NCBI GenBank assembly: GCA_025786725.1
Contig: JAHLTZ010000048.1
Span: 1 to 64,000 of the forward strand
DNA from: Syncephalis fuscata S228
Taxonomy: Eukaryota; Fungi; Zoopagomycota
Length of the DNA: 64,000 bases
Direction: 5' to 3'
Shown here: positions 29,725 to 44,723 of the stretch, piece by piece
Numbering within the stretch: position 1 is the first letter of the stretch
Layout: the number at the start of each line of letters is the position of its first letter
The notes under the pieces: model-generated
Database searches by the model: none
What the model was told of the DNA's origin: nothing
Seen by the model: only the letters and a program-made list of their open reading frames with translations
Program-made: the position numbers and the translations under genes

Positions 29725-31536
29725 TCAGCTAAGCTCACGTAGACACCAATCACGTAATTCTTCTATCTCTTCGTGTGCATATATTTCACTAACACTAGCA
29801 TCGTCCCAGGTTGCTACTAATTCATTGCCATCATAACGGCATCCTAAATAGATACAAACAAGTAAGTTGCCTATCTATCATAAATATAGCAATATTTTAT
29901 TTAAAACATACCTCGCCACTTTGCAGTCATCTGGTGTAATAAAGATAGGTATATCATAGAGGAACTAAATAGGTCAACATCAGTAACACGCCCATGGCTA
30001 CAGCGTAATGTAATACGCTATTGATGTTAATTAATAAAGGCGATTAGTAACGACTAATAACTAAATTGCATTACTGGCAATCGTCCAAATAATTACCAAT
30101 TGAGCCCAGTCAAAGGTATGCTCGATAGTATGTGTAAATTTAGGTGTTTGTCCAAAAGTCCAATCCCATGTCTAATAAAACAAAATGTTACTAAACCCTG
30201 CTATTACCATTACTATCGCCGCTGCCAATTATCCAATTACCTTTAATTGCTCTTGATACTCTTGAATCTTGGGCTGATTTGCTATAAATGTTTCATCAAT
30301 AGGAATCATCATCTGTAATTGACCTTGTCATTAGCTACTAGGCTGCCAATCCGCAATTTATCCATTAACCAACACTTACTGAGGACTCTTTTGGTCGCCA
30401 TATAGTCCTAAAAACTCATAATGAACTGCCTCACAAAACGACAAATGATCCACAGTATAAGAGTAATTACGTAGATTCGTAACCGGAGAACGAACACTTG
30501 CTGTACCTGCTGCGTCTAATCTTGTCTATAATGTATTAAGTAAACCATTAGTATTATTCTATCATTACTGACTTTATTATACCTTATTACTACGTAGAAA
30601 ATGACCAAGACCATCAAGATCTGTGTCAATAAGCATTGTACCATGATGATATGCTCGATCTGAAATCAATTTAAATGCTGAGCCAGATACGTAATTCATT
30701 GATGTAAGCGTATTATTATTATCATTATTATCATTATCCTTATAATACTACTACTACTACTACACATAATAGCTAATATAAAGGATATTTTACGCCGATG
30801 AACTGCAATATCATATCGCTCATTAACTACAGCAGGAATATCAAGTTGATTTAATGCCCGTGTCACCATTTCAACATGAGTTTGTCGCTTGAATACCTTA
30901 CGAGGCATCATTACACAGTAATTAGTATTACCCATATCCTACCATTTAATATTATTTATCCATATACATTAATAAATTTAATAGTTAACAAACTTCAATA
31001 TAATTTATTATCTTATCGCTTACATGATAGACAGCGCCCCACCACTTTGTCGACGTATAATCTCTACACCATCCTCAGACATGGCGTTTAAATTACATTC
31101 TGCCCATGGATTCTATAGTTAATACACACCACCATTAACAACAGCCCAATCTGACGTCAGCAATGGCTTACTTGGTTACGTCCAAAAATAACACAAGGCT
31201 TATTACGATACATAAACAATACATAACTAGCAGGATCTCCATGGCGAACTAGCCTAGATCGATATATATATATATTATATTACAGTCATTCTAGCCCCTT
31301 ATCCCTTTACCATTCTTCTACCGCTAAATTGGACCATGGGTCATTTACTTTTGATATATAGCATAGTATTGATTTAGCAGTATTTTCCTAAGTATATAGT
31401 AAATAGCCATTTGTTTTCTCTTTTCTCCTATTTACCGTGCCGTTCTGCATCCCTTTAGACTGTACATTCACGCTACTAAACAGCGACGTGCAAGTCCCCA
31501 CGATATTCGCGGTAATCTATAGCTGTAGACTCTCAT
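29725..31536 (-). CDS. Mitochondrial lipoate-protein ligase A / lipoyltransferase (Lip3/Aim22 family), with a U12-type AT-AC intron
   Basis: [41 protein letters not shown]|VSGSAFK...[27 protein letters not shown]. Presequence ...ARRCFSS needs one extra T at ~31479. Confidence 0.92.
30691..30788 (-). other. U12-type (minor spliceosome) AT-AC intron, 98 nt, phase 0
   Basis: 5' end ATATCCTTT, 3' end GAATTAC, candidate branch site CGCTTAC about 15 nt from the 3' end. Removal restores the conserved RK-VSGSA motif exactly. Confidence 0.92.
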
Positions 31537-36100: not shown

Positions 36101-37625
36101 TTGCCCATTTACCCTTCACCAATCAACCTCGTATTCGGCCAACGCATAGACGCCATCCTAGCAGTGGAGCCTGGAGTGCCGCATCTGGTTCTGCTGGATC
36201 ATCGCAGCGACTGCCATCGTCAGTTGAAGATATCATTACGTTTCTATCATCGCCACCCAACTCGCCACCTGGTAGTGGACTGCATCCATTGGCCACTTCT
36301 ATGACTGCATCTACACTGGGTAGTAAAGCTAGTACTAATGGCTATAAACCAGCCACTGAACGTGTACTCACCTTGTTTATTCAAATGCATCTATGTCGAT
36401 GCACACTTAAAGACTATTTGCGCCATCGAGATGATGCTATTTGCGGTGAAGGCATGCAAAATAACAATGACATGTCATCGCGCGACCCGCTCTCATTTGT
36501 CGATGGTATTGCCAATGTTCGTTTATTTAGACGTATTGTAGAGGGAGTGGCTTATATCCACGCCCAAGGCTTAATGCATCGTGACTTGAAGCCTCCTAAT
36601 ATATTTTTGGAATTTGCCAATTCTTCTGCTAGTACGCCCGAACCAGATTGGCTACGTCGTCACGCTGCCTACCAACAGGTGGAGGCGCTTATTCCAAAGA
36701 TTGGTGACTTTGGCCTAGTGGCGCAAATGAACAATACGGCCGCATCGACCTCTACCACGTCATTGGCCTCATCGACCTCTATGATGCCATCGCCTATTTC
36801 ACCAGGCTATATAGCGGCCAGCAATCCTTCTACACTACAGCCAAAGGATATAGGCTATGGACCATGCAGTATGTTTGGCCGATCAGCACCTGTCAAGTCA
36901 ACATACGGTATTATATCACCATCTGGCATGATGTCTTCATCACGTACCAGCGGTGTAGGCACAGTAACAGTAAGTAGATAGATAACTTTATAATATGCTT
37001 TTTATTAATAAGTATATACAGTATGCTGCGCCAGAACAGCTCTCAGGTCATCCAAACAACTATGATGCCAAAGTAGATATTTATGCACTTGGTGTCATCT
37101 TTCTTGAGCTATGCCATCCATTTGGCACATTGATGGAACGAGCAACTGTGCTTAAACGTCTCCGTCAAGGTGTACTGCCAGATGCATTTGTGCGGGCCTG
37201 TCCTAAAGAAGTAAGTCATTTACTATAGCCACCTATTATTAATAGTATAACTAACAAATGCGCATAGGCTGCCTTTATTCTTTGGCTTACCGCAATGGAT
37301 CCAGCATTGCGTCCAACTGCTCAACAAATTCTGGAATTTGATCTGATGCGTCCTGAATCTATTGTAAGTATACATACAATAAATATAATAACATTTGCTA
37401 ATAATACTAATAACAACGCAATACTAATAATAGGTGAATGCACCAGTATGGCCAATGCATGTAGATATGTTACGTTCGGAAAACGAATCACTTCGTCAAC
37501 GTATTGCCGAACTAGAAGCACGTATGCAAGACTGCCATTTATGTTCCTCTAGCCCATCACTCGCCTCCTCTTCTTACCATGCGAATAGCTGTTCTTCTCC
37601 ACTTAGCCAACATCGCCCACAATAG
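33160..37625 (+). CDS. eIF2alpha kinase, HRI (heme-regulated inhibitor) type
   Basis: HRI N-terminal domain LLLVSLLENFCQLY...LFFLICRALYHMG, SRYRDDYEEMRALGKGGYGSV, YAVKKI, VVRYYGSWLE, long acidic insert, LFIQMHLC, HRDLKPPNIF, KIGDFGL, GVGTVTYAAPEQ. The 5' end is uncertain (33160, 33833 or 34128). Confidence 0.88.
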
Positions 37626-37799: not shown

Positions 37800-38870
37800 T
37801 TAAGCATGAAACACTTCTTCAACTGGATCTGCAGGCAGTTTGGTGTTGGTCGATCTTTCTTCACGTTCCAATAGCTGCACTCGCTTGTCAACGTATTTAT
37901 GGGCCCGACGTTGAATGAGTGCCGCACGTACCTAAATAAATAAATACATTAATATTAATAAATAATCATTAGTGCTATAATAAATATGCTATCATTTAAA
38001 CGATTTACCTGGTTAGGCGAAATGTATCGTGGATTTTCCCATACAACAGCACCGCCAAATCCACCGGCAAATATCTTGATTGGCTGTAGGACAAATCGAG
38101 GGCCTACTTCAACAAGCTGTGTCTTCTTCTCTTCTCCCTTAATGGTTGTTGACACCACCTCACTATCTTTGTCTATAATCTGATAATTACGGAACCATAG
38201 ACGGCCATCGACAATAGAGAAACTAATAACGTGATCCACGAATGGCTTACTCTTGCGTGTGCCTTTAGGAACACCAAAGATACGAGTAAGAAGCGATTTC
38301 ATCACTCGTAGATGGGGTGATTCGTCAAAGTTCTTATCAAACGATACAATGGGACGTGATCCCTTCAAGTGATTACCCGTCATACGCAATTCATCCATAG
38401 TATGAACTAATGGCCATTAGGATCAATTACATAAATACGCATCAATTATTAACAACTTACTGTTCTGTACGTGGAATTTAACGGTAGGGCCATTGGGTGT
38501 CTTGGCCATCCATAGGTATAAATCGGACTTTTTACGTGCTTCAAAGAAAAGACAGTTGTTGCAGTTATTAAGTTCGGCCAATTCGTTAAGCGCGTCAAAT
38601 CCATGTTTAGTATCAAGTTTGGCATCTACCAATTAATTAGTATTATTGATTTGTTAGATTCAATAACTTACCGCGTTTAGAATGAGGTAGCAATACTTCA
38701 ATATCGCTCATAAGATGGCGCTGGCGGAAATTGATACCGCGCGTACTAAGTATCAGGACTCGCTGCTTATTGCGCACTACGGGACTCTTGCTTGCACTGG
38801 TAACGGCATCATTCTCAGTAGTCGTATCCTTGCCTCGCTTCTTCACCGCTGATTTGTAGGCACTTGCCAT
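37800..38870 (-). CDS. BRX1: Ribosome biogenesis protein Brx1 (Brix domain)
   Basis: NKQRVLILSTRGINFRQRHLM, LNELAELNNCNNCLFFEARKK, HTMDELRMTGNHLKGSRP, LVEVGPRFVL. Confidence 0.95.
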
Positions 38871-44255: not shown

Positions 44256-44723
44256 TCACATTATAACTACAGTACATGACGGATCATTGGGAATACATCC
44301 TGCTCGGGCAAGCAGATCACTTCTTGATACAACCACTTCTCTACGTGGAACAGCTCCTAGTGGAATTACTGTATATCCCATATTAACGAATGGATTGCCA
44401 ATATATCTGGGTGGCATACCTTGTATAGCATTGACTCCTGTTGTATAGAATGGGTCGTTGTTGCTAAATGATCCTTGGTTAGATCCGGAGGAAATAGGCT
44501 TAATAACATCATCAACTGAGACAACGCCGTTAAGTTGGCCGTTTCTAGCTACGGACTTGGCTCCCAAATCAAATATATCCTTTATATTTTCTGTTCTACG
44601 TTGGCCATTTTCTCCCATCATGTATCCAACTGCCACGGAATCGGAAAATGCCACGGGCCTAGCCTTGACAGTGTCAACCAGAAGGGCGGCAAGTAAGCCA
44701 AATAATCCAACTTTAAAATTCAT
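44256..44723 (-). CDS. Small secreted protein, 155 aa, single exon, unknown function
   Basis: Signal peptide MNFKVGLFGLLAALLVDTVKA. Two C-terminal cysteines (GCIPNDPSC). Confidence 0.75.
   Translation of the reverse strand: MNFKVGLFGLLAALLVDTVKARPVAFSDSVAVGYMMGENGQRRTENIKDIFDLGAKSVARNGQLNGVVSVDDVIKPISSGSNQGSFSNNDPFYTTGVNAIQGMPPRYIGNPFVNMGYTVIPLGAVPRREVVVSRSDLLARAGCIPNDPSCTVVIM

Follow-up and report, generated by a model that had tools for sequence, protein, structure and literature searches.

The window, a 64-kb stretch of Syncephalis DNA, carries on its minus strand a gene of the lipoate ligase/transferase family. A tentative start exon encoding MQNGT lies at about 31450-31436, and the following exon (31311-31387), placed by translation and tblastn, ends in W with a GT donor at 31310. 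The exons at 31172-31253 (also seen with tblastn) and 31024-31112 cover positions 17-40 and 41-65 of the Pfam profile LplA-B_cat (PF21948), the latter ending in GAVYH and interrupted by a 1-nt frameshift within the GGGG at 31037-31040; the next exon enters the profile from position 71. This exon (30789-30938), placed by translation, PF21948 and tblastn, encodes DMGNTNY...DIAVHRRK, and its last codon, AAA at 30789-30791, specifies the conserved lysine. The exon at 30583-30690 begins with VSGSA and was placed by PF21948 and Escherichia coli LplA. The one at 30380-30525 encodes ...GDQKSP(Q) and was placed by tblastn and comparison with L011, an environmental contig; its donor region, CAG|TAAGTG, would need one more base to give a canonical GT donor in frame. 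Four short C-terminal exons complete the gene, two of them (30241-30312 and 30097-30171) placed by frame and co-linear tblastn matches, and two (29912-30017 and 29725-29843, with the stop codon TGA at 29725-29727) by eye and weak HSPs. With tblastn the C-terminal exons are co-linear with orthologs up to ...DWAQL, while a Pfam search with each of the four taken singly gave no match, Lip_prot_lig_C included. Exon by exon, the gene matches PF21948 over positions 17-199, and its remaining introns have GTAAGT- or GTATGT-type donors and AG acceptors.

Similar to E. coli LplA, yeast Lip3 (Aim22) and human LIPT1, the gene combines an LplA-B catalytic domain with the motifs RKxSGSA, formed solely by the AT-AC junction described below, and HHGT, and it is co-linear with fungal orthologs annotated as lipoate-protein ligase A or lipoyltransferase. 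It differs from these three members in that the window copy carries two 1-nt defects and its start is tentative. The earlier note on this DNA had described the lysine of RKxSGSA as the adenylate-forming residue of the family. Its position is indeed aligned, but "adenylate-forming" fits the bacterial member and not necessarily this Lip3/LIPT1-like enzyme. The yeast and human proteins move lipoyl or octanoyl groups from H protein to E2 subunits and are not ATP-dependent ligases (PMC7831266), and "ligase" may thus be the wrong word for the activity here. Searching the assembly with the PF21948 profile returned two loci, the window gene and G000:C1:770818-771273 (+). The second may be a LipB/Lip2-type octanoyltransferase, which would leave the window gene as the only LplA-type locus found in the assembly.

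The open reading frame of the window copy is not intact, as it contains two 1-nt defects that each amount to one missing G. The GGGG at 31040-31037 lacks one base, so that the SGG and GAVYH halves lie in different frames, where orthologs read SGGGAVYHD. Further downstream, the donor after ...AGT CCT reads CAG|TAAGTG (30374-30381, minus strand), and no GT-AG pair joins it in frame to the ATG ATG ATT at 30312; the equivalent donor in L011 is CCG|GTACGG. If both anomalies were real the gene would be broken, perhaps a pseudogene of recent decay in which the AT-AC segment is the relic of a U12 intron. Such decay would fit the change of frame from SGG to GAVYH and the exon pair 30380/30312 that cannot be joined (defect at about 30379). 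We nevertheless consider it improbable: every exon is open and follows the order of the orthologs, no other splice site is damaged, the gene is the sole LplA-type locus that the assembly yielded, and each defect comes down to the loss of a single G. Because the exons are otherwise open and conserved, we regard both defects as assembly errors, an explanation we hold to be likely; the shortfall in GGGG is probably a homopolymer error. The true sequence would then show a run of five Gs in place of the GGGG at 31037-31040, and the donor would read CAGGTAAGT.

Between the exon ending in RK and the exon beginning with VSGSA lies the segment 30691-30788 (minus strand), which we read as a phase 0 AT-AC intron, U12-type by its 5' splice site and placed by sequence, the Pfam boundary 125|126 and orthologs. 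It is 98 nt long, not a multiple of 3, and has a GC content of 0.22. On the minus strand, CGT (30794-30792) and AAA (30791-30789) are followed by ATATCCTTT (30788-30780), and at the other border the intron ends with ...CGCTTACATCAATGAATTAC at 30691, after which GTA TCT GGC TCA GCA is read from 30690. U12-type 5' splice sites read [A/G]TATCCTT from the first intron base on, and ATATCCTTT conforms to this. The terminal AC (30691-30692) is the first AC or AG 3' of the putative branch site and is followed by VSGSAF. Rich in A and terminated by AC, the final 34 nt, TGATAATAATAATACGCTTACATCAATGAATTAC, contain no polypyrimidine tract. Retention of the intron yields the read-through ...RLHQ* with a TGA at 30698-30696. 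Re-reading the minus strand bore out all coordinates and sequence statements of the earlier note, among them its claims that the U12-type consensus is matched exactly at the 5' site, which we find at the break in homology, and that retention leads to this TGA. The intron body (30713-30763, minus strand) consists mostly of simple repeats, (GTA)5-6 followed by ATAATG and ATAATA units.

Counting motifs in the 64-kb window does not single out this site, as the octamer ATATCCTT is not enriched there (3 found versus 3.47 expected), and neither is GTATCCTT. Further octamers of these two kinds occur at 36844-36851 (minus strand), 44575-44582 (plus strand) and 38824-38831 (plus strand). They were considered as U12 sites and rejected, two being read without a downstream branch-site motif and the third lying antisense to a long kinase ORF; they are probably chance occurrences. 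The signal is the placement of the octamer, not the motif count: ATATCCTT begins where LplA homology stops, and the AC ends where homology resumes. From base composition we estimate the chance of such a placement at ~1e-6.

Homology fixes the junction. In PF21948, exon 30938-30789 matches positions 71-125 (E=1e-7) and exon 30690-30583 matches positions 126-159, so that the two exons abut exactly, 125 and 126 being consecutive in the profile. The downstream exon also aligns with residues 134-168 of E. coli LplA (E=1e-5), starting at V134; the residue before it, K133, is the catalytic lysine of that enzyme. In tblastn the orthologs of Spizellomyces punctatus and Polychytrium aggregatum run co-linearly over the junction, reading ...KK | VSGSA.... 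A phmmer search of the upstream exon against solved structures gave only spurious matches to designed leucine-rich repeats. We enumerated all candidate introns that keep the frame open, comparing junction peptides of a few codons and searching the exons singly. RK-VSGSA is lost or damaged with every GT-AG or GC-AG pair that preserves the frame, and only AT(30788)...AC(30691) restores the motif. The most plausible alternative in this enumeration is an in-frame GT-AG intron, ggc|GTAAAATAT...GGCTCAG|cat (30678-30793, minus strand, 116 nt), and splicing at 30793/30678 would turn RKVSGSA into P.

U12-type branch sites follow TTCCTTRAY, lie ~10-15 nt upstream of the 3' splice site and pair with U12. 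Here the putative branch site is CGCTTACATC versus the consensus TCCTTAAC, so the CGCTTAC that the earlier note described as departing from TTCCTTRAC is non-consensus indeed. The putative site, CTTAC-A-TC at 30701-30708 (minus strand), was placed by the U12 duplex and by conservation in L011; its bulged A, at 30703, precedes the last intron base by 12 nt. Folding the U12 box of the same genome against the last 45 nt of the intron predicted a duplex with U12 GAGUAAGGAUA in which CUUAC pairs with GUAAG and UC with GA (5+2 bp) around the bulged A at 30703. This is the best U12 pairing in the intron outside the 5' site. The complementarity between CGCTTAC and U12 that the earlier note had named as a check is thus predicted, at -6.2 kcal/mol, but taken alone this energy falls short of significance (shuffle fraction 0.08).

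Conservation adds to this. The 10 nt CTTACATCAA are identical in L011, the closest relative, at an equal distance from the 3' AC; the two introns share 14 of their last 24 nt, 10 of them consecutive, despite a GC content of 0.56 in L011 versus 0.22 in the window. Because this 10-nt identity persists despite the strong difference in composition, it supports the branch site, which we consider plausible. Two Gigasporaceae have TCTTAT at an equal distance from the 3' end. Genome-wide, a loose CTTAC branch pattern showed no enrichment (49 versus 41 in the control).

We searched the assembly (29.4 Mb, 371 contigs) for components of the minor spliceosome. A U11 gene scored 47.5 bits, above the Rfam cut-off, and has the conserved 5' end AAAAAGGG. 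The U6atac gene lies inside the window itself (4451-4610, plus strand), with 37.8 bits versus a gathering score of 33 and a conserved AAAGGAGAGA box. The U12 candidate reached 34.6 bits, below the Rfam cut-off of 53; it is full length, with AUGAGUAAGGAUA and an Sm-like site, and its AUGAGUAAGGA box is intact. On the protein side, a candidate resembling PDCD7 (U11/U12-59K) passed the Pfam cut-off with 29.2 bits, and the assembly gave no match for U4atac or for zf-U11-48K, the zinc finger of U11-48K. The combination ATATCCTT...TCCTTAAC occurred in 9 candidates genome-wide versus 0 in a reversed control; measured as far as the branch motif these are 52-136 nt long, and in most of them an AC follows 8-16 nt further downstream. 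U11, U6atac, the sub-cut-off U12 candidate and the PDCD7-like candidate together point to the presence of a minor spliceosome in this organism.

The position of the intron was compared by searching protein representatives with exon 30525-30382, which gave 47 relatives, many of them fragmentary, and reading the genomic DNA at the junctions. At the K|VSGSA boundary the window reads K|ATATCCTTTA...CGCTTACATCAATGAATTAC|VSGSA (98 nt). The environmental contig L011, 85% identical over the query exon (30525-30382) and with a GC content of 0.61, reads K|ATATCCTTTT...GCCTTACATCAAAGCAGCAC|VSGSA (55 nt). Introns of this form are also found in Basidiobolus ranarum (ATATCCTTTT...CTCCTTAATTCAGGATAAC, 77 nt), Dentiscutata erythropus (ATATCCATTT...AATCTTATTTCTGTCTAATAC, 160 nt), Cetraspora pellucida (ATATCCGTTT...AATCTTATTTTTGTTTAATAC, 100 nt) and Polychytrium aggregatum (ATATCCTTTG...TCCTTAAC, with the AC 27 nt further, 111 nt). 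Position in orthologs, which the earlier note had named as a check on its reading, therefore agrees: five further loci, from four other early fungal lineages, have K|ATATCC...AC|VSGSA at this codon boundary. The ATATCC-type AT-AC intron in phase 0 after the lysine codon occurs in Zoopagomycota, Glomeromycota and Chytridiomycota.

Other species differ at this boundary. Mortierella alpina has an AT-AC intron with the U2-like 5' site ATATGT (ATATGTCAAC...CTCACTTAC, 169 nt), and Nowakowskiella sp. JEL0407 one with the U2-like 5' site ATAAGT (ATAAGTATAA...AATTTAC, 65 nt). Dimargaris xerosporica has a GT-AG intron (GTACTTTTAT...TTCACAG, 163 nt; GTACTT...AG), and the intron is absent from Mucor hiemalis, Globomyces pollinis-pini, Spizellomyces punctatus and Coemansia biformis. 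As judged from these sequences, the comparative evidence is the strongest line of support for the intron.

Taken together, we conclude that 30788-30691 (minus strand) is very likely a genuine U12-type AT-AC intron between RK and VSGSA in an LplA-type (Lip3/LIPT1-like) gene. The U12-type interpretation put forward in the earlier note is supported by the continuity of the profile, the lack of a GT-AG option that keeps the motif, the snRNA genes and the five ortholog loci. With catalogued U12-type AT-AC introns (Larue and Roy 2023, PMC10639083) it shares ATATCCTTT, the AC end, the lack of a polypyrimidine tract and the short distance of 12 nt to the putative branch A. Minor snRNA genes in the genome and a position common to U12-like ortholog introns are further likenesses. 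It differs from the catalogued introns in its putative branch site, CGCTTACATC and not TCCTTAAC, and in a predicted U12 register shifted by one base.

In the proposed mechanism, U11 and later U6atac would pair with ATATCCTTT, and U12 (GAGUAAGGA) would bind CUUAC-A-UC in such a way that the A at 30703 bulges out 12 nt before the 3' end. Splicing would then use the first AC downstream of this A as the 3' site, and removal of the intron would join AAA to GTA and restore the frame. Without removal, the protein would stop 32 codons later and lack SGSA, HHGT and the C-terminal domain. Lipoylation may thus depend on minor splicing in this organism, a suggestion helped by the fact that the window gene is the only LplA-type locus found in the assembly.

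The apparent U2-like AT-AC introns that Mortierella alpina (ATATGT...) and Nowakowskiella (ATAAGT...) have at this position, together with the non-canonical branch site here, would fit an AT-AC intron of U2 type that is removed by the major spliceosome. We regard this as very unlikely, since the 5' site matches ATATCCTTT perfectly, whereas neighbouring introns have GTAAGT/GTATGT-like donors, a polypyrimidine tract is lacking and the genome retains U11, U12 and U6atac. Least probable of all is that transcripts mainly use a GT-AG pair, 30793...30678 (116 nt) or 30793...30660, and encode a protein without the lysine motif, for although GTAAAATAT is acceptable as a donor and the frame remains open, the product would lack the RKVSGSA kept by every full-length ortholog, no ortholog intron has such borders and the acceptors lie inside conserved coding sequence.

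The AT-AC junction also bears on deposited gene models. RK-VSGSA exists only after AT-AC splicing, so models restricted to GT-AG introns lose the catalytic motif, and several ortholog protein models are without the lysine motif or begin directly behind it. The deposited models skip the VSGSA exon, run into the intron (KISIFLLKYYL) or mis-join (KKIRSAFK), leaving annotated proteins without the catalytic motif. Affected are P0015 and P0049 (Mortierella alpina), P0042 (Dentiscutata), P0034 (Cetraspora), P0045 (Nowakowskiella) and P0039 (Dimargaris). The earlier note had predicted that GT-AG-only predictors would mis-model the gene, and the deposited ortholog models that omit the VSGSA exon or enter the intron confirm this. 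For this and related fungi, GT-AG-only models would lead to predicted proteins that are truncated or catalytically dead.

The simplest reading of the series is one ancestral fungal U12 intron that later became a U2-like AT-AC or a GT-AG intron in some lineages and was lost in others. The intron would then be ancestral in fungi, with its ATATCC...AC form retained in Zoopagomycota, Glomeromycota and Chytridiomycota. Conversion of minor to major introns via U2-type AT-AC intermediates was reportedly described by Burge et al. in 1998 and Dietrich et al. in 1997. Such a route is also discussed in PMC10639083. The borders ATATCC...AC (five loci and the window), ATATGT...AC, ATAAGT...AC, GTACTT...AG and none (four species) are the states expected along it, the difference being that here both the direction of change and the spliceosome at work in each species are read from sequence only. 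Our judgement is evenly divided on the fuller proposal, namely that a single ancestral U12 intron after the lysine codon has all stages of minor-to-major conversion preserved at this position, and that the branch register with U12 is shifted in the Syncephalis lineage (CUUAC-A-UC). If true, the position would offer a natural series for the study of minor-intron conversion and, as a marker, would help to correct faulty annotations of lipoylation genes in early-diverging fungi.

Minor introns are known from Glomeromycota (Rhizophagus, 205) and Zoopagomycota (Basidiobolus, 249) and are absent from Ascomycota and Basidiomycota (PMC10639083), and our literature search turned up no report of a U12 intron in connection with lipoate ligase or LIPT1. 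The window gene would provide one more well-supported U12 intron in a fungal group already known for minor splicing and leaves existing knowledge of splicing and lipoylation unchanged. What it adds is a positional series across several phyla that resembles minor-to-major conversion, together with the wrong models deposited at the junction in several fungi. Found in at least three fungal phyla, the intron position would be useful as an ancient marker and would illustrate apparent conversion in compact form, and the junction would allow minor splicing in a mycoparasite to be tested by simple RT-PCR. A neighbouring kinase ORF has its best named matches in Glomeromycota, Basidiobolus, Piptocephalis and Mucoromycota, consistent with an early-diverging fungus.
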